In this document: positions 22,605 through 57,300 of the stretch, piece by piece
Layout: every line of letters begins with the position of its first letter
Position numbering within the stretch: the stretch's first letter is position 1
Origin: Macrostomum hystrix
Taxonomy: Eukaryota > Animalia > Platyhelminthes
Direction: 5' to 3'
DNA: 64,000 nt
NCBI GenBank assembly: GCA_950097015.1
Contig: CATNEN010000039.1
Location: forward strand, 7,192,001-7,256,000
The notes under the pieces: generated by a model
What the model was told of the DNA's origin: nothing
Databases searched by the model: none
Seen by the model: the letters and a program-made list of their open reading frames with translations, nothing else
Made by a program: the position numbers and the translations under genes

Positions 22605-23805
22605 ACAGAAGTAGACAGGAGATGGGGTAGGGGTAGAACGGAGAAAGGAGAGAGTAGACAATAAGGGAGAGGTAGACAGGAGATGGCGGAGAGGTAGACA
22701 GGAAATGGGAGAGAGGTAGACAGGAAATGGGAGAGAGGTAGACAGGAAATGGGAGAGAGGTAGACAGGAAATGGGAGAGAGGTAGACAGGAGATAAGAGA
22801 GAGGTAGACAGGAGATGGGAGAGAGTTAGACAGGAGATGGGAGAGAGGTAGACAGGAGATGGGAGAGAGGTAGACAGGAAATGGGAGAGAGGTAGACAGG
22901 AAATGGGAGAGAAGTAGACAGGAAAGGGGAGAGAGGTAGACAGGAAATGGGAGAGAGGTAGACAGGAAATGGGAGAGAGGTAGACAGGAAATGGGAGAGA
23001 GGTAGACAGGAGATAAGAGAGAGGTAGACAGGAGATGGGAGAGAGTTAGACAGGAGATGGGAGAGAGGTAGACAGGAGATGGGAGAGAGGTAGACAGGAA
23101 ATGGGAGAGAGGTAGACAGGAAATGGGAGAGAAGTAGACAGGAAAGGGGAGAGAGGTAGACAGGAAATGGGAGAGAGGTAGACAGTAAATGGGAGAGAGG
23201 TAGACAGGAGATGGGAGAGAGGTAGACAGGAGATGGGGGAGAGGTAGACAGGAGATGGGAGAGAGGTAGACAGGAAATGGGAGAGAAGTAGACAGGAAAG
23301 GGGAGAGAGGTAGACAGGAAATGGGAGAGAGGTAGACAGGAAATGGGAGAGAAGTAGACAGGAAAGGGGAGAGAGGTAGACAGGAAATGGGAGAGAGGTA
23401 GACAGGAGATGGGAGAGAGGTAGACAGGAGATGGGGGAGAGGTAGACAGGAGATGGGAGAGAGGTAGACAGGAAATGGGAGAGAAGTAGACAGGAAAGGG
23501 GAGAGAGGTAGACAGGAAATGGGAGAGAGGTAGACAGTAAATGGGAGAGAGGTAGACAGGAGATGGGAGAGAGGTAGACAGGAGATGGGAGAGAGGTAGA
23601 CAGGAGATGGGAGAGAGGTAGACAGGAGATGGGAGAGAGGTAGACAGGAGATGGGAGAGAGGTAGACAGGAGATGGGAGAGAGGTAGACAGGAGATGGGA
23701 GAGAGGTAGACAGGAGATGGGGGAGAGGTAGACAGGAGATAGGAGAGAGGTAGACAGGAGATGGGAGAGAGGTACACAGGGAATTGGGGAGAAGTAGACA
23801 GGAGA
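22605..23805. repeat. 22-bp purine-rich minisatellite (GAGAGGTAGACAGGAGATGGGA)
   Basis: About 54 tandem copies. Confidence 0.95.
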
Positions 23806-23954: not shown

Positions 23955-26900
23955 TCATAACCTTAGACTTGTTTGACTTGCAAAAATCGACACCGAAATC
24001 AATGTGAAAACTGTCGAAAAATTCGACCAGCTGGTTGCTTGGCTCAAACTCGTCTGCCCATCTTCTCCGGCCAGGTGCGACTGCAGGTGCACGCCTTAAA
24101 ATAAGAGAATAGAGTTTGGGACACCGTTTTTAGCATAAAACCATGAACGCAGATCCAATGATGCTGCGGAACAAAACAAAAGTTGGAATGCACGTTAACG
24201 CGTAACAACCACCACACATCGTGTAACACCCCGCTGAACTTCTGGTACCCTGGACGTTCTCCTGACACCCTAAGACTCTCCTGACACCCTACAGACTCTC
24301 CTGACACCCTACAGACTCTCCTGACACCCTACAGACTCTCCTGACACCCTACAGACTCTCCTGACACCCTACAGACTCTCCTGACACCCTACAGACTCTC
24401 CTGACACCCTACAGACTTTCCTGACACCCTAAAGACTCTCCTGACACCCTACAGACTCTCCTGACACCCTACAGACTTTCCTGACACCCTAAAGACTCTC
24501 CTGACACCCTACAGACTCTCCTGACACCCTACAGACTCTCCTGACACCCTACAGACTCTCCTAACACCCTACAGACTCTCCTGACTTTCCTGACACATTA
24601 GAGACTCTCCTGACACATTACAGACTGTCCTGACACCCTACAGACTGTCCTGACACCCTACAGACTCTCCTGACACTCTAAGACTCTCCTGTCACATCAC
24701 ATACTCTCCTGACACCCTACTGACTCTCCTGTCACCCTACAGTCACATCTGTAACCTGAACGACTCTCTTGAAACCTGACAGACTCTCCTGACACCCTAC
24801 AGACTCTCCTGACACCCTAAGACTTTCCTGACACCCTACAGACTCTCCTGACACCCTACAGACTCTCCTGACACCCTACTGACTCTCCTGTCACCCTACA
24901 GTCACATCTGTAACCTGACCGACTCTCTTGAAACCTGACAGACTCTCCTGACACCCTAAAGACTCTCCTGACACCATGCAGACCTTTCTGACACACTACA
25001 GTCTCTTTTGACACCCTACAGACTCTCCTGACACCCTACAGACTCTCCTGACACCCTACAGACTCTCCTGACACCCTACAGACTCTCCTGACACCCTAAG
25101 ACTCTCCTGTCACCCTACAGTCACATCTGTAACCTGACCGACTCTCTTGAAACCTGACAGACTCTCCTGACACCCTACAGACTCTCCTGTCACCCTACAG
25201 TCACATCTGTAACCTGACCGACTCTCTTGAAACCTGACAGACTCTCCTGACACCCTACAGACTCTCCTGACACCCTACAGACTCTGCTGACACCCTACAG
25301 ACTCTCCTGACACCCTACAGACTTTCCTGACACCTTACAGACTCTCCTGACACCCTAAGACTTTCCTGACACCCTACAGACTCTCCTGACACTCTAAGAC
25401 TCTCCTGTCACATTACTGACTCTCCTGACACCCTACTGACTCTCCTGTCACCCTACAGTCACATCTGTAACCTGACCGACTCTCTTGAAACCTGACAGAC
25501 TCTCCTGACACCATGCAGACCTTTCTGACACACTACAGTCTCTTTTGACACCCTACAGACTCTCCTGACACCCTACTGACTCTCCTGACACCCTACAGAC
25601 TCTCCTGACACCCTACTGACTCTCCTGTCACCCTACAGTCACATCTGTAACCTGACCGACTCTCTTGAAACCTGACAGACTCTCCTGACACCCTAAAGAC
25701 TCTCCTGACACCCTGCAGACCTTTCTGACACACTACAGTCTCTTTTGACACCTTTCAGACTCTTCTGAAACCATACTGTCACTTCTAACATCTCTTCAAG
25801 GCAGACTCACTGGAGTACTTCTCAAAGAAGTAATTAGCGAAGAAGCCGGTGGCCGAATAGCGGCTGTTGCTGACGAAGACCAGCCTTAGGCAGGCGGCCT
25901 GTCGCTCGATCCGGTACCGGCGCTGCCTGGTGTTGGATAGATCGCCGCAGAGTCTGGCCAGAGCCGGCAGGCCCGGCCTGTCGCACTCCTCCACGTGAAC
26001 GAAGTCGCTCTCGCTGTCAGGGCAGCTGCGGCAGAATTTTCGGAAATTTTTTGATTAAGCTGTTCAGATCCCCCTCTATTTGAGATACCTTTCGCTTCCC
26101 AAATCCAATTTTGCCTCAGATCCCATTCTTTCTCAGATCCCGAATATTCTCGGATCCCATCCTGTCTCAGATCCCATTCTGTCTCAGATCCCATCCTATC
26201 TCAGATCCCATTCTGTCTCAGATCCCATCCTATCTCAGATCCCATCCTATCTCAGATCCCATCTTATCTCAGATCCCATCTTATCTCAGATCCCATCTTA
26301 TCTCAGATCCCATCTTATCTCAGATCCCATCTTGTCTCAGATCCCATCTTGTCTCAGATCCCATCCTATCTCAGATCCCATCTTATCTCAGATCCCATCT
26401 TATCTCAGATCCCATCTTGTCTCAGATCCCATCTTGTCTCAGATCCCATCTTGTCTCAGATCCCATCCTATCTCAGATCCCATCCTATCTCAGATCCCAT
26501 CCTATCTCAGATCCCATCTTATCTCAGATCCCATCCTATCTCAGATCCCATCTTGTCTCAGATCCCAATTCGTCACAAAAATCCTAATTCGTCACGGACT
26601 TCAGGTTGTCAAGATCCCTATTTGCATCAAGTTCCAATTTGTCTCCAAAGAATTTCAAGGACTCCGCCTACCTGTCGGACATTGTCTCGGTGCTGAAGTC
26701 GCTAAATTCAATCCGGATTCGCTCCTGAGGCCTCGAGTAGAAAATGTATTCGCAGTGGAGCCGCTCGGGATACTCGAAAGGGAAGTTCGGGCTGGAGAAG
26801 CTGCCCGCTGAGCGCTGCCTGCTGTAGAAGCTGAAGTGGCAGCCCAACTCGCTGTTCTGATTCTTGTAGGTGCCCAGCACTGCGAAGTCTGAAGAGGGGA

Positions 26901-29900
26901 ATTTGAGCATTGTGAGAACTCGAGACTATTGGGATCTTGAGCATTTTTGAGAACTCGAGACTATTGGGATCTTGAGCATTTTGAGAACTCGAGACTATTG
27001 GGATCTTGAGCATTTTGAGAACTCGAGACTATTGGGATCTTGAGCATTTTGAGAACTCGAGACTATTGGGATCTTGAGCATTTTGAGAACTCGAGACTAT
27101 TGGGATCTTGAGCATTTTGAGAACTCGAGACTATTGGGATCTTGAGCATTTTGAGAACTCGAGACTATTGGGATCTTGAGCATTTTTGAGAACTCGAGAC
27201 TATTGGGATCTTGAGCATTTTTGAGAACTCGAGACTATTGGGATCTTGAGCATTTTTGAGAACTCGAGACTATTGGGATCTTGAGCATTTTTGAGAACTC
27301 GAGACTATTGGGATCTTGAGCATTTTGAGAACTCGAGACTATTGGGATCTTGAGCATTTTGAGAACTCGAGACTATTGGGATCTTGAGCATTTTGAGAAC
27401 TCGAGACTATTGGGATCTTGAGCATTTTGAGAACTCGAGACTATTGGGATCTTGAGCATTTTGAGAACTCGAGACTATTGGGATCTTGAGCATTTTGAGA
27501 ACTCGAGACTATTGGGATCTTGAGCATTTTTGAGAACTCGAGACTATTGGGATCTTGAGCATTTTGAGAACTCGAGACTATTGGGATCTTGAGCATTTTG
27601 AGATCTCAGGGCCATAGGGGATCATCGTAGCCAATCTGACTCACCCTGCACGAACTTGTAGGCAAACTCCAGTCCCATCTGAGGCGTGCTGACTGGCTTC
27701 TTTGCCTGAAACTCGAGCTGCAGCTTGGGACCGGAGCGGCCGTCGCCGCCTCCGCCGCCGCTCATGATCCGGATTGGTCGCTCAGGCTGCACGCTGCAGT
27801 GGGTCTCTTCCACGGATTCGTCCCTGATCCCCAATCCGCCACTGGATCTATCGTCGGCGACGTACCTGGTGACGATCACCCGGTCCCGATCGGCGCATCG
27901 ACTTAAAAACGGCTGCTTCAGCACCACCTGCTGCTGCTGGGTGGTCGGTGGCAAAGCGGTTAACGCCTTTGCCTTTCGCACCTTTCCCACCAAGGCCCCT
28001 GAGCTCGATTCCGCGGCTAGGCCACATTTATTTGGGGCGCAGCCGCGGAGAGAAGGCTTTGGGGCTTGTCGTGCAATTTACGCCTTAGAGGGCCAACCTC
28101 CATGGCGCAGTGAGAGTGTACACTGCCTGACGATGAGAAAGTCAGGGCAGATGTACACACCTGCGTGAGCGTGTGCCAGCGTACAGTATCTGTGTGCGTG
28201 TGTGCTCAGGGGTCAGTGGGATGGGCAGAATTGCCTCCTCGCTGGCTTCGGATCAACTGTAACCAAATGATGTGCCATTGCCCACAGCCCTCCTGCAAAT
28301 ATCATTAGTACGAGTATTACCACCTGCTGCTGCTCAGAGGGCCGGGCTGAATCGTGCTTGAGCACAGCCAGCTGTCGGATCTCTAGAACAATGCGCTCGG
28401 TTCGATTCGCCCGACCTCGCAGCAGCCAGCGGCAGCGGCCGCCAGGATAGCCGAACGGGAAGCTGGGAGCTCGAACGATTCCGAAGGCCGACTGGCCGCT
28501 GTCGATGATAACCGGCTCCTCGGGACATTGCGTCACAGTCGGCGGCTCCAGGCTTGGCGGCGCTGACACAGGCTGCGATGACGCCGGAGTCGACGGCAGC
28601 TCGTGAGGCTCAGGCTGCTGATTCTGCTGGTGCCGCCGGAAGAACTGGTAGCTGCCACTGAAGCCGCGCTCACCGGGCGAGGTGACCCCGTTGGAGTGGA
28701 ACAGCATGGCCACCCGGCCGCTGACGGACCAGAAATCGTCCGGCGCACGATCGACTCCACAGCGAATGACGACTGTTGGCGAGGCGGAGGCGGCCAAGTC
28801 GAAGGCTTCCGCATCGTCGGTGCCGTCATGAATGTCAAGCCGGTCGCCGCGGTAGTTGGAGCCGCAGCTGGAATAAGGAAGTGGATTGGGGAATGATTGG
28901 GAAGTGGATTGGGGAAGAATCGGGAATAGGATGGGGGAAGAATCGGGAAGTGGATTGGGGAAGAATTGGGAAGAGGATTGGGGAAGAATCAGGAAGTGGA
29001 TTGAGGAATAATTGGTAATAGGATGGGGGAAGAATCGGGAAGTGGATTGGGGAATAATTGGGAAGTGGATTGGGGAATAATTGGGAATTGGATTTGGGAA
29101 TGATCGGGAAGTGGATTGGGGAAGAATTGGGAAGTGGATTGGGGAAGAATTGGGAAGAAGATTGGGGAATAATCGGGAAATGGATTGAGGAATAATTGGG
29201 AAGAGGATGGGGGAAGAATCGGGAAGTGGATTGGGGAAGAATCGGGAAGTGGATTGGGGAAGAATCGGGAAGTGGATTGGGGAAGAATCGGGAAGTGGAT
29301 TGGGGAAGAATCGGGAAGTGGATTGGGGAATAGTTGGGAAAAAGATTGGGGAAGAATCGGAAAGTGGATTGAGGAATAATCTGGAAGGGATTGGGGAATA
29401 ATTTGGAAGAGGATTGGGGAAGAATCGGGAAGTGGATTAAGGAATAATTGGGAAGAGGATGGGGGAAGAATCGGGAAGTGGTTTGGAGAATAATTGGGAA
29501 GTGGATTGAGGAATAATTGGGAAGAGAATGGGGAAAGAATCGGGAAGTGGATTGGGGAAGAATCGGGAAGTGGATTAAGGAATAATTGGGAAGAGGATGG
29601 GGGAAGAATCGGGAAGTGGTTTGGAGAATAATTGGGAAGTGGATTGAAGAATAATTGGGATGAGAATGGGGAAAGAATCGGGAAGTGAATTGGGGAAGAA
29701 TCGGGAAGTGGATTGAGGAATAATCTGGAAGGGATTGGGGAATAATTGGGAAGAGGATTGGGGAAGAATCGGGAAGTGGATTGAGGAATAATTGGGAAGA
29801 GAATGGGGGAAGAATCGGGAGTGGATTGGGGAAGAATCGGGAAGTGGATTGGGGAAGAAACGGGAAGTGGATTGGGGAAGACAGTTGGGGAGGAATGAAT

Positions 29901-32900
29901 CGGAGAGAATATCAAGAAGCAGTGTGTACCGCTCGCCGGCTGCGAGAGTTTCCAGCTGGAATGTCTCGAAGCTGATGCGCAGGGCCTCTCCCGGCTCGCC
30001 CAAGAATCGGTACTCGACTCGAGTCCTCTGGGGATAAACGGATGGGAAATTCTCGCTGCTGAACGAGCCCTGCTTGGCCTGACTGCTGAGAAAATCCTTT
30101 CGAAGCTGCACATTGGGCTGATCCGGAGACACAAACGATGGGTTTGTGTGCGAATCTGGGATAATTTAGGGAGATGTTGCTGACATAAACGAAGAAACTG
30201 TTTAGTAGCAAAAACTTTATGGAATATTCAAGTACAATGGCGCTAATACGAGTAAGAACCATCGCTTAACTAAGAATAATAAGATTTCTAAGAAAAAAGG
30301 AATTTCTAAAACACGCTTGATTTCAAAGAATCAAAGGATTTTTGGAATCTAAGAATCAGGAGCTTTCTAAGTAGGAGGAATTTCAAATAGTTAAAGATTT
30401 CTTGGAACCGTTAGATTTCTAAGAATCGTCAGTTTTTAAGAATCGTTCGATTTTAACGAACCGTTAGATATCTAAGAATCATTAGATTTCTAAGAATCTT
30501 TAGCTTTCGAAGAGTCGTTAGATTTCTAAGAAACGTTAGACTTTAAAAAATAGTTCGATTTCTAAGAATCGTTAAACTTCTAAGAATCGTTTGATTTCTA
30601 TGAATCTTTAGATTTCGAAGTATCGTCTGATTTCTAAGAATGGTTAAACTTCTATGAATCTTTAGATTTCTTAGAATCGTGGGACAGCGCAGATTTCACC
30701 CACCGCCTCCTGCGGCGCCGTCCACTCCGATGCCTTCAAGCGCTGAGCGGCCCCTCTCCAGCGGCTCAGTCGGGGTCAGCTTGTGCCGCGCCACAAACGC
30801 GTAACGCCCAGCGAACCCGGAGCCGGTGACGGCGTCGGAGTTGGCCACGAACTTAACCAGGAGGAAGGCGTCGGCGCTCACCACGGAGGCCGAGTCTGCC
30901 GAGGCGCAGTAGCTGGAGAAGTGGGCCAGCACTACGCTGGCCTCGCCGAATTCACTCTCGGTCTGGTACACCAGCAGGTGGTCCCGTCTGGCTGCGGTCA
31001 GCAGGCGGCAGGCCGTTTCGTTTCTGCCGCCACCGGCCTGCAGGCTGATGTCGCGCAGGTCCAGCCGGATTCGCTCGCCTTCGGCCGCACGGAAGTAGTA
31101 GCGGCATTGGTCGCCGGGCTTGTAGTTCTGCGGATGAGCTGGCGAGAAGAACTGACCGGACTTGCCGGCTGCCGGATCCGAGCTGCGGAATTCGCGGTCG
31201 CATGGAGCTCCGGGCAGCGGCCGCCCGCTGGACTGGAACTGGGCTGCGGAATTCGGAGAGAGAGAATGCCCTGGCAAGTGGATCGAAAGTGGAGCCCCTT
31301 AAAAGGGCCGTTTTATTACTTGCTGTATTTTCCTTATATAAATAGAATGTTATGATTACAACCAGCCCAGTTTCTCCTCAGTCTGTAGACCACTCGATTT
31401 TGTCATCAGTTCCTCAAACATTTGAGTTCGCCATCAGTCATTTGAGTTTGTCATCAGTCATTTGAGTTTGTCATCAGTCATTTGAGTTTGTCATCAGTCA
31501 TTTGAGTTTGTCATCAGTCATTTGAGTTTGTCATCAGTCATTTGAGTTTTTCATCAGTCATTTGAGTTTGTCATCAGTCATTTGAGTTTGTCATCAGTCA
31601 TTTGAGTTTGTCATCAGTTATTTGAGTTTGTCATCAGTCATTTGAGTTTGTCATCAGTCATTTGAGTTTGTCATCAGTCATTTGAGTTTGTCATCAGTCA
31701 TTTGAGTTTGTCATCAGTCATTTGAGTTTGTCATCAGTCATTTGAGTTTGTCATCAGTCATTTGAGTTTGTCATCAGTCATTTGAGTTTGTCATCAGTCA
31801 TTTGAGTTTGTCATCAGTCATTTGAGTTTGTAATCAGTCATTTGTCATCCTACAGTTTCTTACTCATTTGAGGGATAATTAATTCGCTATACCTAACAGA
31901 AGATAAATATTAAAAATTCAGATTTTCCCAGGATTTTGCAGATCGGAGCTGGGATCTTTTACAAAAAGCCAATTAGAAACGGAGACATCTCTATGGGTGA
32001 TTATTGTGTCGAAAAAATCTAGAAACGAGCACATTCCACTTTCATATTATCCGAATTCATTCATTTAAATGCTAATTTGCGAATTTGATTAATCCTAAAT
32101 CCCAGCTTTCTTATTTTCCGCCGATATAAGGGGGGGTCTACTTTTCTGAATTCATTGGCTTTTGAGTACTGATGTAGTCCTATTGGCAGCCAGCATTGTC
32201 TGATCCGTGAAAGCCCCCTGTACAAGCCTAGGAACCACAATAGTCAGTTAATTAATTATTCATTAATTAGTTTAATAAATAATGTTTAATATAATTTTTC
32301 ACTACAGTAAACTCCACCTTAGCAGTCTTATCAGGTTTGCTAGTGATGCTGTCAGTTTCAGTAAGCGAATCTTCAGATATTTATTGCGACTGTCATATGA
32401 ACTTTATCTAACTAATTCCTAAATGATTGCTCATTAAAGCCTTTACACGCTCAGTCTCTGCAATTATTGTTCTGGGGATTTCTTGTATTGGGGATTCCCA
32501 CTTTTGGGAATTCTCAAAATTACTGACTAATGACCTTGTCGTGGGAATTTCCAGTCACGGGGATTCCTTGTATTGGGGATTCCCACTTTTGGGAATTCTC
32601 AAAATGACTGACACATTATGACCTTTTCGTGGGGGTTTCCTAGTCATAGAGATTTCTTGTATTGGGGATTTCCACTTTTGGGAATTCTCAAAATGACTGA
32701 CAAATGACCTTGTCGTGAGAATTTCCAGTCACGGGGATTCCTTGTTTTGGGGATTCCCACTTTTGGGAATTCTCAAAATGACTGACACATGACTTGTCGT
32801 GGGGGTTTCCTAGTCATAGAGATTTCTTGTATTGGGGATTTCCACTTTTGGGAATTCTCAAAATGACTGACAAATGACCTTGTCGTGGGAATTTCCAGTC

Positions 32901-35900
32901 ACGGGGATTCCTTGTATTGGGGATTCCCACTTTTGGGAATTCTCAAAATGACTGACACATTATGACCTTTTCGTGGGGGTTTCCTAGTCATAGAGATTTC
33001 TTGTATTGGGGATTTCCACTTTTGGGAATTCTCAAAATGACTGACAAATGACTTGTCGTGGGAATTTCCAGTCACGGGGATTCCTTGTATTGGGGATTCC
33101 CACTTTTGGGAATTCTCAAAATGACTGACAAATGACCTTGTCGTGGGAATTCCTTATCGTGGGGATTCCCAGTCTGTGGATTCCCAGTCTGGGGATTCCC
33201 AATCTTGGGGATTCCTAATATTGGGGATTCCCAGTGTTGATAATTCTCAGTGGTAACGATTAAATTTTAGGGATTTCAAGGGATATTGTGCATATCTTGT
33301 TGACTTGCTAACCAGGTGACTCCGATAGGAAGAAATAAGAATTTTTGCTCTAGGTTTCATGCCAGTTAAATGGATATCAAGTTCTCAAAATATTCAGCGA
33401 GTTCTCAAGCTAACAAATCAATCCCAATTGTCCATGGCTCAAATAGGAACGATGCTCCACTAAGCTCAACTGCTTCTGTGCCGATAGCTCTACTAGTCTG
33501 CTAATGCATTTGGACCAGTAATGAAGCAATGACATTCTAATCCCAGATACATTTGGGGTTACTGCTTCCATTTCTTTCTTAATCCTCAGCATCGCGTGCT
33601 TTTTAGCTCTCCCTAGATTAGAAAGTGGAATTAGAAGGTAAGTACGTTGGGGCTATTTTCCCAAAGATGGAGCTGACGAATTTGGGCTAAATTCTAAACC
33701 ATGTGTATGAATTCCACTTTTCACAAAATAAATAATTTCAACATCAGCTCTCAATGCATCTCTACATCACCCTTCTTATCGAATCCCAACTACTGAATTT
33801 CCCCATCCCATCAATACTCTTCCCACATCCCATCAATACTCTTCCCACATCCCATCAACACTCTTCCCACATCCCATCAATTCTCTTCCCACGTCCCATC
33901 AATAGTCTTCCCACATCCCATCAATACTCCTCCCACATCCCATCAATACTCTTCCGACATCCCATCAATAGTCTTCCCACATCCCATCAATACTCCTCCC
34001 ACGTCCCATCAATAGTCTTCCCACATCCCATCAATAATCTTCCCACATCCCGTCAATACTCTTCCCACGTCCCATCAATAGTCTTCCCACATCCCATCAA
34101 CACTCTTCCCACATCCCATCAACACTCTTCCCACATCCCACCAATACTCTTGCCACATCCCATCAACACTCTTCCCACATCCCATCAACACTCTTCCCAC
34201 ATCCCGTCAATACTCTTCCCACATCCCATCAACACTCTTCCCACATCCCATCATACTGCCTCAAAATCCCATCCCATCATACCGCCTCAAAATCCCATCC
34301 CATCATACTACCTCAAAATACCATCCCATCATACCGCCTCAAAATCCCATCCCATCATACCGCCTCAAAATCCCATCAATACTCTTCCGACATCCCATCA
34401 ATAATCTTCCCACATCCCATCAACACTCTTCCCACATCCCATCAATACTCTTCCCACATCCCATCAACACTCTTCCCACATCCCATCATCACTCTTCCCA
34501 CATCCCATCAATACTCTTCCCACATCCCATCAATACTCTTCCCACATACCGTCAATACTCTTCCCACATCCCGTCAATACTCTTCCCACATCCCATATCA
34601 ATACTCTTCCCACATCCCATCAACACTCTTCCCACATCCCATCAACACTCTTCCCACATCCCATCAATACTCTTCCCACATCCCATCAACACTCTTCCCA
34701 CATCCCATCAATACTCTTCCCACATCCCATCAATACTCTTCCCACATCCCATCAATACTCTTCCCACATCCCATCAATACTCTTCCCACATCCCATATCA
34801 ATACTCTTTCCACATCCCATCAACACTCTTCCCACATCCCATCAACACTCTTCCCACATCCCATCAACACTCTTCCCACATCCCATCAACACTCTTCCCA
34901 CATCCCATCATACCGCCTCAAATCACAACGCTCCCAAAGTCCAACAGCAGACCTCTCTTCTCAAAGCTGAAGCCGCCGCGGAAGCCGCGGAAGCGGTTGA
35001 CACTGGCGGCAGTCTGGTACGGCCAGCTCATTCTGGAGTGCATCTCCAGCATCAGAATGCTGCCAGACGAGTAGAAGGTGCTCTGCGGCGCCCCGCTGCC
35101 GCACATCTGGTAGTTCGATGGGTCCTCGGAGTTGAGCTCAGCTTTAGAAGAGTCTAGATAGAGTTTCACATAGTCCTGGCAGCTGGAAGGTTACAGAGGC
35201 CAGTCTGACAGGTTATTTACAATGGAAACACCACGGAGTTATTTCAAATACCCACTGCCCACTTCCCAGTGGCTCCCAAGCCGAATGACCGATTTTCGTA
35301 AAAGTCCACCACGTGGATAAAACTGGTTATTTAGTGAGTCTAACTGGTTATTTAGTGAGTCTAACTGGTTATTTAGTGAGCCTAACTGGTTATTTAGTGA
35401 GTCTAACTGGTTATTAAGTGAGTCTAACTGGTTATTTAGTGAGTCTAACTGGTTATTTAGTGAGTCTAACTGGTTATTTAGTGAGTCTAACTGGTTATTT
35501 AGTGAGTCTAACTGGTTATTTAGTGAGTCTAACTGGTTATTTAGTGAGTCTAACTGGTTATTTAGTGAGTCTAACTGGTTATTTAGTGAGTCTAACTGGT
35601 TATTTAGTGAGTCTAACTGGTTATTTAGTGAGTCTAACAGGTTACTTAGTGAGTCTAACTGGTTATTTAGTGAGTCTAACTGGTTATTTAGTGAGTCTAA
35701 CTGGTTATTTAGTGAGTCTAACTGGTTATTTAGTGAGTCTAACTGGTTTTTTAGTGAGTCTAACTGGTTATACTGGTTATTTAGCGAGTCTAACTGGTTA
35801 TACTGGTTATTTAGTGAGTCTAACTGGTTATTTAGTGAGTCTAACTGGTTATTTAGTGAGTCTAACTGGTTATTTAGTGAGTCTAACTGGTTATACTGGT

Positions 35901-38900
35901 TATTTAGCGAGTCTAACTGGTTATACTGGTTATTTAGCGAGTCTAACTGGTTATTTAGCGAGTCTAACTGGTTATTTAGTGAGCCTAACTGGTTATTTAG
36001 TGAGTCTAACTGGTTATTTAGTGAGTCTAACTGGTTATTTAGTGAGTCTAACTGGTTATTTAGTGAGTCTAACTGGTTATACTGGTTATTTAGCGAGTCT
36101 AACTGGTTATACTGGTTATTTAGCGAGTCTAACTGGTTATACTGGTTATTTAGCGAGTCTAACTGGTTATTTAGTGAGTCTAACTGGTTATTTAGTGAGT
36201 CTAACTGGTTATTTAGTGAGTCTAACTGGTTATACTGGTTATTTAGCGAGTCTAACTGGTTATACTGGTTATTTAGCGAGTCTAACTGGTTATTTAGTGA
36301 GTCTAACTGGTTATTTAGTGAGTCTAACTGGTTATTTAGCGAGTCTAACTGGTTATTTAGCGAGTCTAACTGGTTATTTAGTGAGTCTAACTGGTTATTT
36401 AGTGAGTCTAACTGGTTATTTAGTGAGCCTAACTGGTTATTTAGTGAGTCTAACTGGTTATTTAGTGAGTCTAACTGGTTATACTGGTTATTTAGTGAGT
36501 CTAACTGGTTATTTAGCGAGTCTAACTGGTTATACTGGTTATTTAGTGAGTCTAACTGGTTATTTAGTGAGTCTAACTGGTTATTTAGTGAGTCTAACAG
36601 GTTATTTAGTGAGTCTAACAGGTAATTTAGTGAGTCTAACTGGTTATTTAGTGAGTCTAACTGGTTATTTAGTGAGTCTAACTGGTTATTTAGTGAGTCT
36701 AACTGGTTATTTAGTGAGTCTAACAGGTTATTTAGTGAGTCTAACTGGTTATTTAGTGAGTCTAACTGGTTATTTAGTGAGTCTAACTGGTTATTTAGTG
36801 AGTCTAACTGGTTATTTAGTGAGTCTAACTGGTTATTTAGTGAGTCTAACAGGTTATTTAGTGAGTCTAACTGGTTATTTAGTGAGCCTAACTGGTTATT
36901 TAGTGAGTCTAACTGGTTATTTAGTGAGTCTAACAGGTTATTTAGTGAGTCTAACAGGTTATTTAGTGAGTCTAACTGGTTATTTAGTGAGTCTAACAGG
37001 TTATTTAGTGAGTCTAACTGGTTATTTAGTGAGTCTAACTGGTTATACTGGTTATTTAGTGAGTCTAACTGGTTATTTAGTGAGTCTAACTGGTTATTTA
37101 GTGAGTCTAACAGGTTATTTAGTGAGTCTAACTGGTTATTTAGTGAGTCTAACTGGTTATTTAGTGAGTCTAACTGGTTATTTAGTGAGTCTAACTGGTT
37201 ATTTAGTGAGTCTAACTGGTTATTTAGTGAGTCTAACTGGTTATTTAGTGAGTCTAACAGCTATCAAACAGCTTTAGTGTTTTTTTCAAGAAAGTGCTCA
37301 AAGTGGTCGAGTAACTTTGATAGACTCAAATATACTTTGAGAAGAATTCTTAATTAACATGGCTAAGAAGGTATAAGCTAGAAAAAGTGCAATCTTAATC
37401 AGATAATCCAGTCGTGTTAATCCGAGAAGCCTGCTGTATAGCTGCTGGCTTTTACGTTTCAATTAACTCTTATCCGATTCTTTCAGCGGTGTGAATAAGT
37501 TTTCCCGCTGCAGACCGGCTATTAATTATACTCGCAGAATCTAGAGAAATTTCCACATTTGCCTCAGATTTACCAAGCTCAGGTGAGCAGATATCAGGGC
37601 TTCGTTTAACACGCTCGTTCAAAATGGCTTCGTTTCAGACTGAGGGAGAGACTGAATGAGAGTCTGAAAGAGAGACTGAATGAGAGACTGAATGAGAGAC
37701 TGAATGAGAGACTGAATGAGAGACTGAATGAGAGACTGAATGAGAGACTGAATGAGAGACTGAATGAGAGACTGAATGAGAGACTGAATGAGAGACTGAA
37801 TGAGAGTCTGAATGAGAGACTGAATGAGAGACTGAATGAGAGTCTGAATGAGAGACTGAATGAGAGTCTGAATGAGAGACTGAATGAGAGACTGAATGAG
37901 AGTCTGAATGAGAGACTGAATGAGAGACTGAATGAGAGACTGAATGAGAGTCTGAATGAGAGACTGAATGAGAGACTGAATGAGAGTCTGAATGAGAGAC
38001 TGAATGAGAGTCTGAATGAGAGACTGAATGAGAGACTGAATGAGAGACTGAATGAGAGACTGAATGAGAGACTGAATGAGAGACTGAATGAGAGACTGAA
38101 TGAGAGACTGAATGAGAGACTGAATGAGAGTCTGAATGAGAGACTGAATGAGAGACTGAATGAGAGTCTGAATGAGAGACTGAATGAGAGTCTGAATGAG
38201 AGACTGAATGAGAGACTGAATGAGAGACTGAATGAGAGACTGAATGAGAGACTGAATGAGAGACTGAATGAGAGACTGAATGAGAGTCTGAATGAGAGAC
38301 TGAATGAGAGACTGAATGAGAGACTGAATGAGAGACTGAATGAGAGACTGAATGAGAGACTGAATGAGAGACTGAATGAGAGTCTGAATGAGAGACTGAA
38401 TGAGAGACTGAATGAGAGTCTGAATGAGAGACTGAATGAGAGACTGAATGAGAGACTGAATGAGAGACTGAATGAGAGACTGAATGAGAGTCTGAATGAG
38501 AGACTGAATGAGAGACTGAATGAGAGACTGAATGAGAGTCTGAATGAGAGACTGAATGAGAGACTGAATGAGAGACTGAATGAGAGACTGAATGAGAGAC
38601 TGAATGAGAGACTGAATGAGAGTCTGAATGAGAGACTGAATGAGAGACTGAATGAGAGTCTGAATGAGAGACTGAATGAGAGACTGAATGAGAGACTGAA
38701 TGAGAGACTGAATGAGAGACTGAATGAGAGTCTGAATGAGAGACTGAATGAGAGACTGAATGAGAGACTGAATGAGAGTCTGAATGAGAGACTGAATGAG
38801 AGACTGAATGAGAGACTGAATGAGAGACTGAATGAGAGACTGAATGAGAGACTGAATGAGAGACTGAATGAGAGACTGAATGAGAGACTGAATGAGAGTC

Positions 38901-39567
38901 TGAATGAGAGACTGAATGAGAGACTGAATGAGAGACTGAATGAGAGACTGAATGAGAGTCTGAATGAGAGACTGAATGAGAGTCTGAATGAGAGACTGAA
39001 TGAGAGTCTGAATGAGAGTCTGAATGAGAGACTGAATGAGAGTCTGAATGAGAGTCTGAATGAGAGACTGAATGAGAGTCTGAATGAGAGACTGAATGAG
39101 AGACTGAATGAGAGTCTGAATGAGAGACTGAATGAGAGACTGAATGAGAGACTGAATGAGAGACTGAATGAGAGACTGAATGAGAGACTGAATGAGAGAC
39201 TGAATGAGAGACTGAATGAGAGTCTGAATGAGAGACTGAATGAGAGACTGAATGAGAGTCTGAATGAGAGACTGAATGAGAGACTGAATGAGAGACTGAA
39301 TGAGAGACTGAATGAGAGACTGAATGAGAGACTGAATGAGAGACTGAATTTAAAAGACTGAAGAGGCTGAGGCCCCAACCCACCGGTCATTGATTGTTGG
39401 CTTCATGTCAAACTCTTGAAATTTGATTTTGACAATTTCGTCCAGCTGCGCAGTGAACACGAAGATGAGGCACTGAATCTCCATCGGGTAGGGCGTTGGG
39501 AACTGCGGCGACTGAAACATGCCGGACTTCCTCAGCTCGGAGCTGTGAAATGCAAAGCAGTGACAAC
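23955..39567 (-). CDS. Multi-CUB-domain extracellular protein (about 5 CUB domains; cubilin / suppressor-of-lurcher-like); 5' exon not located
   Basis: Phase-compatible exons 39567-39384, 35182-34953, 31243-30704, 30155-29930, 28867-28324, 27927-27645, 26888-26672, 26025-25811, plus a tentative last exon 24094-23955 (hydrophobic, GPI-signal-like tail). CUB motifs: GMFQSPQFPTPYP..C, GQFFSPAHPQNY..C.Y.F, GSFSSENFPSVYP, GIVRAPSFPFGYP..C.W, GSFSSPNFPFEYP..C.Y.F, GF.G.Y.F. Confidence 0.8.
24258..25770. repeat. 20-bp minisatellite (CTGACACCCTACAGACTCTC) with higher-order variants
   Basis: Tandem copies with recurring variant blocks. Confidence 0.95.
26115..26570. repeat. 17-bp minisatellite (TCTCAGATCCCATCTTA)
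   Basis: About 26 tandem copies, intronic. Confidence 0.95.
26903..27602. repeat. 34/35-bp minisatellite (GAGAACTCGAGACTATTGGGATCTTGAGCATTTT)
   Basis: About 20 near-identical copies filling an intron. Confidence 0.95.
27939..28318 (+). mobile_element. tRNA-derived SINE family B, full length, with a 16-bp TSD; forms an intron of the CUB gene
   Basis: A box TGGCAAAGCGG, B-box-like GAGCTCGATTCC, AT-rich tail; flanked by the perfect direct repeat ACCACCTGCTGCTGCT (27923-27938 and 28319-28334). Homologues at ~52195-52325, 56550-56810 and 62765-63125. Confidence 0.88.
28875..29880. repeat. ~23-bp G-rich minisatellite (GGGAAGTGGATTGGGGAAGAATC)
   Basis: Tandem variant units filling a CUB-gene intron. 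Confidence 0.95.
30280..30680. repeat. Degenerate ~18-bp repeat (GATTTCTAAGAATCGTTA)
   Basis: Old, diverged tandem array. Confidence 0.75.
31420..31845. repeat. 20-bp minisatellite (TTTGAGTTTGTCATCAGTCA)
   Basis: About 21 near-perfect copies. Confidence 0.97.
32470..33230. repeat. ~70-bp tandem repeat with dimeric structure
   Basis: Recurring TTGTATTGGGGATTCCCACTTTTGGGAATTCTCAAAATGACTGAC units. Confidence 0.9.
33800..34915. repeat. 22-bp minisatellite (CCCACATCCCATCAATACTCTT)
   Basis: About 48 tandem copies. Confidence 0.95.
35320..37260. repeat. 21-bp minisatellite (AACTGGTTATTTAGTGAGTCT) with a 30-bp insertion variant
   Basis: About 88 copies; source of the spurious (SLTGYLV)n ORF. Confidence 0.97.
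37636..39348. repeat. 12-bp minisatellite (ACTGAATGAGAG / TCTGAATGAGAG)
   Basis: About 140 copies with a single biallelic A/T site. Confidence 0.97.
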
Positions 39568-51826: not shown

Positions 51827-53625
51827 TCAGGCCACAGAGAAGGTCATCTCCAGCACGTCGTCGATGCCCGCGCGAATCACATCGCCGGCCTTGACTGGCC
51901 CGACACCCGACGGCGTACCGGTCAGGAGGATGTCGCCGGGCTCCACGGAGATCCTGGCTGCCACGAAGGCCAGCAGGCGGGGCACGGGGAACAGCATCTG
52001 GCTCAGCTGGCCGCTCTGGCGCTCCTGCTCGTTGACGCGAAGCCACAGCCGGGTGTGGGGCCCGATGGAACTGGGCTGCAGTGGGGGGTCCTGGGCGCTG
52101 ATTGGACAGGAAGTATCGAAGCACTTGGCCAGCGTCCAGGGCAGGCCGGCCGACTTCAAACGGTCCTGCGGAGTTTGTCGAGTTCGAGGCAGGTAGTAAT
52201 GATAATACTTGCAGGCAGGAGGCTGCGGGCACTGCCACAGAAATTCTACATATTTAACTCACCGCTGAGAATAAATACAAGCCCCAAGCCATTCTCTCCG
52301 CGGCTGCGCCAAAAATTAATGCGGCTCACCAGTCTATTAGTGCGTGAGTCTGGCACCACCAGTCAACCAGCTCACCTGCATGAGTCTGTCAGTCATGTCC
52401 AAGCACAGAGTGTAGCCAGCCACAGCGGCCATGGCCTCCTCATCGGTCACAGCCGGTCCAGACAGCCGCTTGCCGATGATAACGGCCAGCTCGACTTCGT
52501 GATGAATCTCGCTGGTGTTGGGCGGCAGCCGGATGGGCCCGCTGCCCTCCAGCAGCAGCGAGGAGGCCGGCTTCATGAAGATGACCGGCTCGCTAGGCAC
52601 CCGATTGCCAAGCTCGGCGGCATGTTCGGCGTAGTTTCTGCCCACCGCAATGATCTTGCGGCACGAGCGAATTATGCTGGCCTGCAAGTTGGCGCAAGGA
52701 CATATATAGGCCTGCTTAAGTGCAATCTTGGAGCGGTGCGGCTGACTTGTGCGAGGAAGAGTTTTATGGGTGAGTATACAGTGAGAGTGGTTGGGTGTTT
52801 TGTGATTTGTGGATGGAATGCGCTTTGTAGGCGAGTGTACATCGGGAGTAGTCACTTGTGCATTGAAGCCTTCTATGGTCGAGTGTACATCGGGTGGGGT
52901 GAGTCACTTGTGCATTGAAGCATTCTATGGTCGAGTGTACATCGGGAGTGGGGTGGAGGACTTGTGCATTGAAGCATTCTATGGTCGAGTGTACATCGGG
53001 AGTGGGGTGGAGGACTTGTGCATTGAAGCATTCTATGGTCGAGTGTACATATGGAGTGGGGTGGAGGACTTGTGCATTGAAGCACTCTATGGTCGAGTGT
53101 ACATCGGGAGTGGGGTGGGGGACTTGTGCATTGAAGCATTGTACTTTCGAGTGTACAGTGGGAATGGGGTGGGTGAAGTCTGGCTTCAACGGAGTTATTA
53201 ATTGGCTTCAGATAAAGTACACTGTGAAGACTATAATGGATACAAAAAAGCAGAAACGGATAAAAAACCAAATAATTCTGAAATTCTCGCACGCAAAATA
53301 TCAATAATCACTCTGTTGACTGATTCATGATTGATTCGTTAGTGCCATTTTGCGACAATATACTCGACTTAAATTCCATTTTATATTTGTTGCAGTTAAT
53401 GGAAATTTTATATACTATCAGAAGACACAGGTAGCATTGAAAATTCATGAGTTAATGACTGATTTAACAATTTAACATTGGCGACAGTGAAACAACAAGC
53501 AGGATTATTAAGTACAAGGAGCAGTCAGTCGCTAGCAAGAATCTGGAGGCAATTCTACTAATCACATGTAGTGAGGCTACTTATTAAGTAGTATGCAGAT
53601 TTATACATATTTTGTTACGTACCAT
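51827..53625 (-). CDS. FAHD1: Fumarylacetoacetate hydrolase domain-containing protein 1 (acylpyruvase / oxaloacetate decarboxylase)
   Basis: Exons 52681-52376 and 52165-51827, plus a putative ATG-only coding exon at 53625-53623 (ATG|GTACGT). Motifs KIIAVGRNYAEH..E, FMKP, HHEVELAVIIG, GYTLCLDMT, GLPWTLAKCFD, EPGDILLTGTPSGVG. Confidence 0.9.
52195..52325 (-). mobile_element. SINE family B fragment inside the FAHD1 intron
   Basis: Reverse complement contains GGCGCAGCCGCGGAGAGAATGGCTTGGGGCTTGT and CAGTGCCCGCAGCCTCCTGC plus a TAT tail. Confidence 0.7.
52830..53175. repeat. ~60-bp tandem repeat
   Basis: About 6 copies of ACTTGTGCATTGAAGCATTCTATGGTCGAGTGTACATCGGGAGTGGGG. Confidence 0.9.
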
Positions 53626-54333: not shown

Positions 54334-57300
54334 TCACCGTTTCTTCTTGGCCACCGTGGAGGAAAACTGCGCCCTCAGGCCGTTCATCTCGTCCTCCTTG
54401 CGCTCCAGCTGACGGTTGAGCTCGCTGACGTGATCGGAGATGGCGGCCAGCTGCTCCTCGTAGTTGCGCCGCGTCGTCTCAAACTCTTCGCGGCACTGGA
54501 AAGCGGCGTCTTTGAGTCCCGCCGCCTCGTTTAGAGCCAGCAGAAGGCGCTGATTGGCTGTCTTGGCGGACAGCTGGGCGTGCATGAGGCGCGAGTCCAG
54601 GCGCTGCAGGGCCGCCTCGGATTCGGCGCATTTGGTTTCTAAGAAAGCCGCCCGCAGCTGGGCCACGGCTGCCAAGGATGAGTCATCGTCTGCGATTGAC
54701 GCAAATGCGGGACTTGACTGCTGCTGCTGCTGCTGCTCCGGAGTCTGAGGCGGGGTTGGCTGCAGCGCGGACGTTGTTGGAGGCGATGGAGACGACTGCT
54801 TGGTGCCCATGCGAGTTGACATCATCTGGACAGTTAAGTTATGGCAGCAAGGTAGAGAAAGGACAGGGAGGGTTGTGTGATAATAATATTCTTGGGGGGT
54901 TGTGGACACTGGCTCAAACCTGAGCACACATAGGCTCATGGCTACCTATGCAGGTTTGGGCCTCGCCGCGGATTCGAGCTCAGGGGCCTTGGTGCGAGAG
55001 CCCGGTCAGAGTAAGGGTTGAGAGAAGAGGTAGAGCTGGCAATGCTAACCTGAGCCTCCAGCATCCATCGCTCCCGGTCCTTCTCCAGCTGGGCAATGCG
55101 AGCCTGCTGACTGCTCAGCCGGGACTCCATCAGCGCCAGCTGGTCCTGCTTCCGCTGAAGCTCCTCGCGCAGCCCGGCCAGCTCTGCGGCGACGGCGGCT
55201 TTCGCAGCTTCATCGGCTTCAGCAGCGGTGGGCGAGGCGGACACTGTTGTGTTTGCTGATTGTGACGGCGGCGACGGCGACAATGAGCGGGCGTTAGTAA
55301 CATTATTACCGCCGGCAGAGGACAATGTTGCAGAGGAGAACATCAGGCGGGAGGCGATCAGGTCACAGTGCTCGCTCACCTGCAGGAAAATGTCAGGGCA
55401 AATGACATTTGACAGATAATGACATTTGACAGATAATGACATTTGACAGATAATGACATTTGACAGATAATGACATTTGACAGATAATGACATTTGACAG
55501 ATAATGACATTTGATAGATAATGACATTTGACAGATAATGACATTTGACAGATAATGACATTTGACAGATAATGACATTTGATAGATAATGACATTTGAT
55601 AGATAATGACATTTGATAGATAATGATATTTGATAGATAATGACATTTGATAGATAATGACATCTGACAGATAATGGAAGTTGAAATAACATTTGACAGG
55701 TAATGGCAGATAATCACAATTTGAAATCTGACATAATGAAATTTTTCTGACAATACGCTCGTATGACATTTGACAGCAGGTGACAATTGGCATCAATTGC
55801 CAGTTGATAGTCCCGTGTCGCTAGCTCACGCCAAATGCCAAACGCAAAGTACAAGTGTACCCACCTGAGCAGCCAGAAGGTCGGCTTTGGCTAGCAGGGC
55901 GGCAGCCGCGGTGAGGCAGGCCCTGTTCCCGGACCCGATTTCGTCAGCTACTCGCAGAGCCGCCTCAGCGTTGGCTTTTCTTTCGCAGGCGTCGAACACT
56001 CGTCGGCAGGCCGTGGCCAAGTCACCGAAGCGCCGTTTGACACAGTCGGCCAGCTGACTGCGCGATGCCATAGCCGGCGAGGACTCCGCAGTCTTGTCTA
56101 ATCTGGCCAAGGCGCGCAGAGCGTCGGGCAAGTCGGCAGTCAGGCTGCGGCAGAGGTCGGCATTCACGGACTGCAGCTCAGGGGACAGGTGCTCGGCGGA
56201 CACGGCGGCAAACAGCGGCTCGGCCAGGTCAGCCAGACGGTCTGCCAGCAGCGGGCAGAGGTGCAGCAGCGCCAGCAGCTGTGTGTCGGTGGCCAGCTCG
56301 GGCCTATCGGCTGGCAGCTCCGAGCACAGGGCTCGAGCCGCGGCAACGCAGGCCCGCAGCTGCCGGCTGGCCGGCTCAGTCCAGCTGCCGGCTGAGCGGA
56401 GGCGGGCCTCGGTGTGCAGATGAAGGTCGACCAGCGATTTCAGCGCCCTGACCAGGTTGGGAGTGTGGCTGCGAGTCCACTCGGACCAGCGGCGTGCGAT
56501 CTGGAGCGGGCGGGCGGAATCGCATTTAGCTCATTGCTTTATCAGATATCCACTGAATGAGAGAGGTCAGGAGTTCGAATCGCATTTATTTGGGGCGCTG
56601 CCGCGAAGAGAAGGCTTGGGGGGCTTGTCGTGCAATTTACGCCCTTGACGCCTGCGTACAGTATCTGTGTGCGTGTGTGCTCACGAGTCAGCGAAATCGA
56701 ATGTGGAGGCAGGAGGCAGAATTGCCTCCTCGCTGGCTTCAGGTCAAGTATCACCAAATGATGTGCCACTGCCCGCAGCTCTCCTGCAAAAAGTTATTAT
56801 TTATTATACAGCTGGGGTAGAAGATTGAATGGGATCTCCCGCATCTGTCCACGGACTGAAATTCTGTACACAGTCTTTGCAAGCTGCGGCAGGCTGGCTT
56901 GGGCAATGCGGATAATCGAGATTTTTACAATTAACAAATATAACGAAGAACAAGGAGTTTCAATTCCAAGGTCCATTTCATACCTGAGCCTCCTCCGAGT
57001 CCCTGAGCAGTCCGGACAGCAGCTCAGCGTCGCGTCTGAGTCCCGCAGACTCGTCTAGCGCCTCGGCAAGCGCCTTGGCCGCTGACTCCGACCTAGCCGC
57101 AGCCGCAGCAGCTTCCGCCGCCAGCCGGTCGCACTCGGCTCTGGCCAGCCGGCGAGCCTCGGCGGCTTCGCTCAGGGCGGCATCGCGGGCCGCCTTTGCC
57201 AACGCCGCGGCTTCCTCAGCCGCCGACAGCTCATCGGCCTGGCGCTCCGCAGCGGCTTTGGCGGCTTCTTGGCGCGTCAGCAGCTCCTGGTGCAGGCGGG

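Follow-up and report, generated by a model that had tools for sequence, protein, structure and literature searches.

A short interspersed element within a CUB-domain exon of Macrostomum hystrix, a probable case of intron gain

The conversion of transposable elements into spliceosomal introns is a known mechanism, represented by an intron made by a short interspersed element (SINE) in rice, by the intronization of Alu elements and by introners. In the rice catalase A gene (CatA), an intron was gained through insertion of a SINE in the coding region (PMC2394776), whilst human Alu insertions have created alternative introns in the 3′ untranslated regions (UTRs) of last exons (Sela et al. 2007, PMC2394776). 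The term introner denotes a transposon family in which insertion, together with a splice site derived from the target-site duplication (TSD), yields an intron (PMC9860276, PMC12130899, review PMC11282704); introners are mostly DNA transposons of protists, algae and fungi and are rare in animals (PMC9860276, PMC12130899, PMC11282704). About 5% of the classified introner families derive from retrotransposons without long terminal repeats (PMC12130899), and a survey of 3,325 genomes found introner families in only two animal groups (PMC9860276). In a further model, the AGGT-duplication model of intron gain, a short duplication containing AG|GT supplies both intron boundaries and restores the frame (PMC2394776). 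Here we describe a stretch of 64,000 nucleotides from the flatworm Macrostomum hystrix (C39:7192001-7256000; hereafter the window), in which a SINE interrupts an exon of a gene encoding multiple CUB domains. The reading that best accounts for the locus is that the SINE is spliced out as a gained intron, which we regard as probable on the sequence evidence set out below.

The inserted SINE and the exon that it interrupts

The gene is encoded on the minus strand, and the SINE lies antisense to it within exon 5. The features of the interruption, in window positions, are as follows.

27939..28318, plus strand (antisense to the gene): SINE copy of 380 bp, with A-box-like and B-box-like motifs in its head and a decayed 3′ (ATT)n tail
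27979-27987: private 9-bp tandem duplication inside the SINE copy
28319..28334, minus strand: upstream TSD copy (AGCAGCAGCAGGTGGT, gene sense), which closes the exon (..E Q Q Q) with its first 11 nt and opens the candidate intron with its last 5 nt, GTGGT
27923..27938, minus strand: downstream TSD copy, with four tandem in-frame AGs (27938-37, 27935-34, 27932-31 and 27929-28) and then GTGGT (= Val-Val..)
28213..28215, minus strand: first in-frame stop if the SINE is retained, at which the open frame 29436..28216 stops
28324..28867, minus strand: exon 5a (upstream part of exon 5), which codes for the C-terminal half of CUB3, then a linker and the N-terminal half of CUB4; homologous to the Macrostomum lignano proteins P0001, P0003 and P0007
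27645..27927, minus strand: exon 5b (downstream part of exon 5), encoding the second half of CUB4 and terminating at the donor G|GTGAGT (GT 27644-27643)

The two copies of the 16-mer (minus strand, 28334..28319 and 27938..27923) are identical at 16/16 positions, and similarity stops at both outer edges. Positions 28335-28311 of the minus strand read ...TCTGAG CAG CAG CAG|GTGGTAATACTCG..., and positions 27950-27916 read ...CCACCGACCACCC AG CAG CAG CAG|GTG GTG CTG AAG.... The interruption (28323..27928) measures 396 nt, which is the SINE plus one TSD copy; its deletion places ...ARPSEQQQ, read from one frame, in frame with VVLKQPFLSRCAD..., read from another. A preliminary description of the locus had reported a 380-bp SINE lying antisense in a CUB exon with a perfect 16-bp TSD, which is borne out by the 16/16 repeat, the dispersed family to which the element belongs and its sharp edges. 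The stop that it had predicted at 28213 on retention of the element is likewise the first in frame (28215-28213).

Pfam matches to PF00431 were obtained for exons 3, 4 and 6 (E 6e-8 to 1e-5), and no significant match was returned when the halves of the interrupted domain were submitted separately. The uninterrupted homologous domain of the paralogue on contig C1 matches PF00431 with E 2.2e-7 over profile positions 6-64, a span that includes the insertion site, which upholds the assignment of the interrupted domain as CUB. Within the fourth CUB domain the SINE occupies the variable loop that has the ..ERIVLEIRQL.. strand on one side and the conserved Cys-x-x-D-R-V on the other.

When the M. hystrix genome (220 Mb, 42 contigs) was queried with each part of the exon separately, three paralogues were recovered, at C8:3101224-3101721, C1:26737904-26738548 and C25:3877816-3878259. 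In all three the homologous exon is one open frame, bounded by a shared acceptor region (..C..Y.GD(R/K)L..) and a shared ..SFVQ/R|G donor, and none of the three has an intron at the position of the SINE; the M. lignano proteins P0001, P0003 and P0007 are also unbroken there. Because this continuity in the paralogues and in M. lignano is combined with the TSD, the sequence comparisons settle the polarity of the event: the SINE was inserted into a formerly continuous exon and not into an older intron. The preliminary description had proposed both a retroposon in a once continuous coding exon and a search for the empty exon in paralogues. The TSD, the anatomy of the family and three uninterrupted paralogous exons agree with the former, and the latter yielded the uninterrupted exon on C8, C1 and C25. 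The alternative that an intron already existed at the site, with the SINE landing inside it, is highly improbable and we have rejected it. Nothing was found in its favour, and every other intron of the gene is long and repeat-filled; against it, the TSD is flanked directly by coding sequence at either end, the SINE and one TSD copy account for the whole interval, and the paralogues are devoid of such an intron.

Querying the genome with the element returned 2,921 first-look candidates. One of its conserved 24-mers is present 2,196 times, counting both strands, compared with 0 occurrences of the reversed control, which sets 2,196 copies as a lower bound for the family. When 30 copies were aligned together with their flanks, the 5′ boundary proved sharp (GGGGGTCGGTGGCAGAGCGGTTAACGCG...) and was followed by ~350 bp of body sequence and an (ATT)n tail, family copies being ~360-380 bp long. 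Individual TSDs of 7-17 bp surround the copies and were exact over 8-17 bp (median 12.5) in 32 of them. The label SINE is justified because variable-length TSDs and a simple-repeat tail are the signature of target-primed reverse transcription; judged by this signature, the family is a SINE mobilised by a long interspersed element (LINE). The proposed tRNA derivation fares less well: the consensus has A-box-like TGGCAGAGCGG and B-box-like GTTCGATTCC motifs in its head, which are the sole basis for the claim, whereas ARAGORN, applied to the window, the family consensus and 30 copies, detected no tRNA, and Rfam gave no tRNA match for the element. A BLAST search of the SINE against a phage collection found no match and is irrelevant. 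The window was also said to hold four family copies; this stands for the full copy described here and a near-full one at 62766-63123 (81% identity), the rest being fragments (56583-56790, 54959-55000 and 52277-52325).

Age of the insertion, candidate splice sites and integrity of the gene

To place the insertion in time, this copy was compared with 57 other family copies over 349 sites. It carries 9 strictly private substitutions and ~9 that are common to just 1-3 copies, equivalent to 2.6-5.7% private change, and it diverges from the consensus by 8.7%, relative to a family median of 3.8% (rank 51 of 58). Neither a source nor a sibling copy more than 90% identical was present among the best-scoring genome matches or the 57 compared copies. 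Since the private substitutions, the private 9-bp duplication, the decay of the tail (6/21 positions changed) and this absence of any close copy all point the same way, the insertion is old by these sequence measures. It would instead be young if the element had been copied from an already diverged source, in which case the integrity of the gene would say nothing about splicing. The perfect TSD is in keeping with such an origin, and among the 26 differences that separate it from the consensus, ~6 are indeed subfamily variants found in at least 8 other copies and thus predate the insertion. However, no copy exceeding 90% identity was seen in the comparisons above, the 9-bp duplication and 9 of the substitutions are private, and a tail so decayed should hamper retroposition if it were present in the source RNA; we therefore consider a young insertion improbable.

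Four elements around the boundaries of the interruption are candidate splice signals.

GT at 28323-28322, minus strand: candidate donor 1, CAG|GTGGTA, within 28318..28323
GT at 28320-28319, minus strand: candidate donor 2, GTG|GTAATA, in frame 3 nt downstream of donor 1 and drawing on the opening bases of the antisense tail
27963-27959, minus strand: branch-point-like TTAAC in the antisense SINE head, conserved in the family consensus
27958-27939, minus strand: pyrimidine tract (70%) in the antisense SINE head, conserved in the family consensus and leading directly into CCCAG|CAG|CAG|CAG|GTG

The distance from the branch A to the first AG (27938-27937) is 23 nt. The six ordinary donors of the gene are GTGGGT (twice), GTCTGC, GTACAC, GTGAGT and GTAGGC, and its six ordinary acceptors are all YCAG| after a C/T-rich tract. 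CAG|GTGGTA has GTGG in common with two of these donors and CACCCAG| fits the acceptor pattern, such that both candidate sites resemble the gene's own sites in sequence. The placement of GT and AG within the TSD, and of TTAAC and a C-rich tract in the antisense SINE head, agrees with the preliminary description. Its claim of an exact, clean restoration of the exon holds in part: the join is in frame, but the acceptor that it chose (27929-27928) is the fourth AG, whilst the first AG after the tract, 9 nt upstream, is the most similar to the gene's other acceptors, and the exact product is one of eight. These eight arise from two donors combined with four tandem CAG acceptors, each 3 nt apart, and owing to this spacing every combination is in frame. 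Restoration of the exact sequence can thus occur but need not.

What the sequence shows is the insertion, with its polarity and age, the continuity of the ancestral exon and the integrity of the gene; splicing and the choice of sites we infer. In the sequence of events that we envisage, a LINE-mobilised SINE would have landed antisense in exon 5, in the variable loop of the fourth CUB domain, and its insertion would have produced a 16-bp TSD containing CAG|GT. The upstream TSD copy would then furnish the donor CAG|GTGGTA (or GTG|GTAATA 3 nt on) and the downstream copy the acceptor AG, with the TTAAC branch site and the C-rich tract of the antisense SINE head lying just ahead of it. Removal of the SINE by the spliceosome would keep the frame with any donor and acceptor pair, giving the ancestral protein (..EQQQVVLK..) or one with 0-3 extra Gln and 0-1 extra Val, in a loop whose length varies among the paralogues.

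Apart from these candidates, the 3′ end of the antisense SINE (minus strand, 28293-28310) reads TACTAATGATATTTGCAG|G, a near-consensus branch site and acceptor ~30 nt past the candidate donor; the family consensus at the matching site is (TAA)nTTGCAG|G. On account of these signals, antisense family copies residing in introns could be exonised via this acceptor.

The condition of the rest of the gene provides an indirect test of splicing. The gene model was built from tblastn searches of three M. lignano proteins against the window, together with Pfam, with boundaries set by phase and GT..AG; outside exon 5 it comprises the following exons.

39586-39380, minus strand: exon 1, open
35181-34957, minus strand: exon 2, open
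31247-30753, minus strand: exon 3, open
about 30150-29935, minus strand: exon 4, open
26889-26683 and 26030-25788, minus strand: exons 6 and 7, encoding the last CUB domain, intact and with 44-61% identity to M. lignano family members

The eight homology-supported coding segments (2,385 nt) contain 0 stops and 0 frameshifts. Mutation of these 2,385 nt in silico left them free of stops in 5% of trials at 3.7% divergence and in 0.3% at 7.4%, which extrapolates to ~13% at 2.6%. Within the SINE family, 847 substitutions were accompanied by 130 indel events, of which 118 shift the frame; this rate, 0.139 frameshifting indels per substitution, predicts 8.6-19 frameshifts in the gene, with a probability of none of at most 2e-4. 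Under neutral decay, the observed integrity of the whole gene has a probability of at most ~1e-4, and that of the 729 nt downstream of the SINE and the premature stop, taken alone, a joint probability below ~0.04; the test assumes that the private changes are post-insertional and that the SINE-derived rates are valid for exons. Exons 5b-7 also keep their cysteines and core CUB motifs relative to the M. lignano relatives. That the gene is intact although the insertion is old indicates that, exons 5b-7 included, it most likely stayed under selection, which would require removal of the SINE from the messenger RNA.

The principal alternative is that the SINE merely disrupts the gene, being unspliced or inefficiently spliced, with translation halted at 28215-28213 to leave a pseudogene or a protein truncated after CUB3. 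Several observations favour disruption or otherwise weigh against the intron that we propose. The candidate donor GTGGTA is weak by general metazoan standards, with no G at +5. In run X1 (one run, of unknown type, with positions 27615-28860 covered by the search), neither a contig at either junction nor a spliced read was found, and exon 5b was uncovered; apart from a heavy pile-up on the SINE from other copies, the run gave a single contig, of 280 nt, which lies inside exon 5a and matches 28351-28630 exactly. Searches of transcript-derived proteins with exon 5a, exon 5b and exon 7 were blank, the length window of the search making these blanks weak. The nearest public proteins are all M. lignano entries named 'CUB domain-containing protein / cubilin' (PAA57028.1, PAA71232.1 and others). 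Clear M. lignano counterparts exist for all three paralogues (P0001, P0003, P0007), the pairs being ~85% identical by eye; for the window gene no M. lignano orthologue was seen in the public proteins, the best match having 36% identity. Its counterpart may have been lost from M. lignano, may be unannotated there, or the gene may be fast-evolving, and since the best public match is only 36% identical the gene could be lineage-specific or dispensable, with three paralogues that could cover its function. Exonic insertions that are merely disruptive do occur, as young family copies (L006 and L061, described below) stand in long open reading frames (ORFs) with TSDs that bring no splice sites. As regards the quantitative arguments, alignment error may inflate the indel rate taken from the SINE alignments, the age estimate takes the private changes to postdate the insertion, and the perfect 16/16 TSD is mildly unexpected if the insertion is old and neutral (P ~0.1-0.4, with all 32 nt neutral and 2.6-7.4% change per site), albeit less so if the exon end, the GT, the AG and the Val codons are constrained.

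Against mere disruption stand the age of the insertion alongside 2,385 nt of intact coding sequence, 729 nt of it past the stop, for which the neutral probabilities are those given above, and the conservation of the cysteines and CUB motifs of exons 5b-7. On balance, disruption appears unlikely, although it is the most serious of the alternatives, and we favour, with some confidence, an old LINE-mobilised SINE that lies antisense in the CUB4 loop of exon 5 and is removed by the spliceosome as a gained intron.

The ordinary introns of the gene share a further peculiarity. Every one of them is nearly filled by its own minisatellite array, and the SINE interval is the sole interruption of the gene without one. 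The arrays have periods of 12-34 bp (one of 85/174 bp) in 16-143 copies, often begin no more than a few tens of bases from a splice site, and generate long spurious ORFs. They are located between 22607 and 39349 of the window, at the following positions.

37637-39349, 35321-37258, 33799-34910, 32477-33147, 31419-31844 and 30395-30680: minisatellite arrays
28877-29881, 26903-27607, 26115-26567, 24258-25776 and 22607-23805: minisatellite arrays, continued

Other copies of the SINE family

The wider behaviour of the family was assessed in a sample of 66 copies, 30 drawn from the first-look candidates and 36 taken in genome order from the 24-mer occurrences. Four of the 66 lie in long frames that stay open, and in phase, when the site is read as empty: the copy at the CUB locus (L001) and three others.

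C3:6005261-6005613 (about 6005247-6005623, equal to L020:1487-1863), L020: copy in sense to the gene, a single-exon gene of PAN and lectin-like type
L006:1488-1876: SINE in a transposase-like ORF, 239+98 codons in phase, with a TSD without usable AG..GT
L061:1810-2203: SINE in a transposase-like ORF, 371+236 codons in phase, with a TSD without usable AG..GT

L020 is a second candidate for a SINE-made intron. Its TSD, TAAG|GTACG (possibly 13 bp, TAAGGTACGGTTG), offers AAG|GTACGG in the 5′ copy and (ATT)nTAAG| in the 3′ copy, and on its two sides the frame is open over 169 and 82 codons, in the same phase. In the nearest paralogue (C10) both flanks belong to one open frame, and the open-frame lengths of the other listed members suggest the same. 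The gene family has at least 150 members, and the L020 copy may equally be a pseudogene of this very large family. L006 and L061 are, by their sequence context, plain disruptions, the latter being a young copy with 97% identity to a consensus-like copy. As intron candidates L006, L009, L010, L026 and L061 were all set aside, their flanking ORFs being transposase-like or repeat-derived, or their TSDs being without AG..GT.

The TSDs tend to begin with T or A (n=32 loci): position 1 is T or A in 29/32 and position 2 is A or T in 28/32, with several beginning TAAGG. This bias fits microhomology with the (ATT)n tail, an endonuclease preference, or both, and targets resembling TAAG|GT would predispose sense-oriented insertions to bring splice sites with them. 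AGGT is present, in either orientation, in 5/32 TSDs, whereas both insertions in host-type genes (L001 and L020) have AG|GT in gene sense, for which the chance probability is ~0.006. This coincidence is suggestive, but two loci do not make a family property. Acceptor context could come from either end of the SINE, with the antisense head giving TTAAC and a C-rich tract and the (ATT)n tail, in sense, giving a U-rich tract. The family might accordingly be viewed as a retroposon-type introner, whose exonic insertions persist in either orientation if the TSD has AG|GT and which has added several coding introns, including those of the CUB gene and L020; we put this forward tentatively and hold it to be rather doubtful. 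For the suggestion that the SINE may act as an intron generator across the genome, the 66 copies gave one further candidate.

Comparison with described routes of intron gain

The origin of new spliceosomal introns in animals is still poorly documented, and there are very few known loci at which a SINE has made an intron in a coding region, namely rice CatA, the Alu cases being confined to UTRs (PMC2394776). The flatworm locus retains a readable history, comprising the element, a TSD that offers both of the splice sites, paralogues in which the exon is unbroken and a gene that is still intact, and would represent a clean animal example. If the same SINE had given rise to introns repeatedly, this would indicate that ordinary LINE-driven retroposons can generate introns in a metazoan.

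One close parallel is rice CatA, where a SINE in a coding exon is likewise treated as a new intron, at a single locus and in a protein-coding region. It differs in that it is a plant gene with another SINE and with documented splicing, whereas splicing at the flatworm locus is predicted, with both sites drawn from the TSD. Alu intronization is similar in that an exonic SINE activates a new pair of 5′ and 3′ sites and that the antisense SINE supplies the pyrimidine tract. The four Alu introns are nonetheless situated in 3′ UTRs and are of the alternative kind, either retained or spliced, with sites inside the Alu that often arose after mutation; at the flatworm locus the site lies inside a domain-coding exon and the candidate splice sites are in the TSD. 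With the AGGT-duplication model the locus has in common a duplicated AG|GT stretch that would bound the intron and restore the frame, although the flatworm TSD is a by-product of retroposition rather than a segmental tandem duplication, and the body of the intron is the element itself. Finally, the locus resembles introners in that the element plus one TSD copy would equal the intron, in the TSD-derived candidate splice site and in membership of a multi-copy family. Introner families, however, consist of many near-identical introns in unrelated genes, whereas the flatworm SINE provides one locus and one candidate in 66 copies that are mostly non-exonic and carry no dedicated splice sites.

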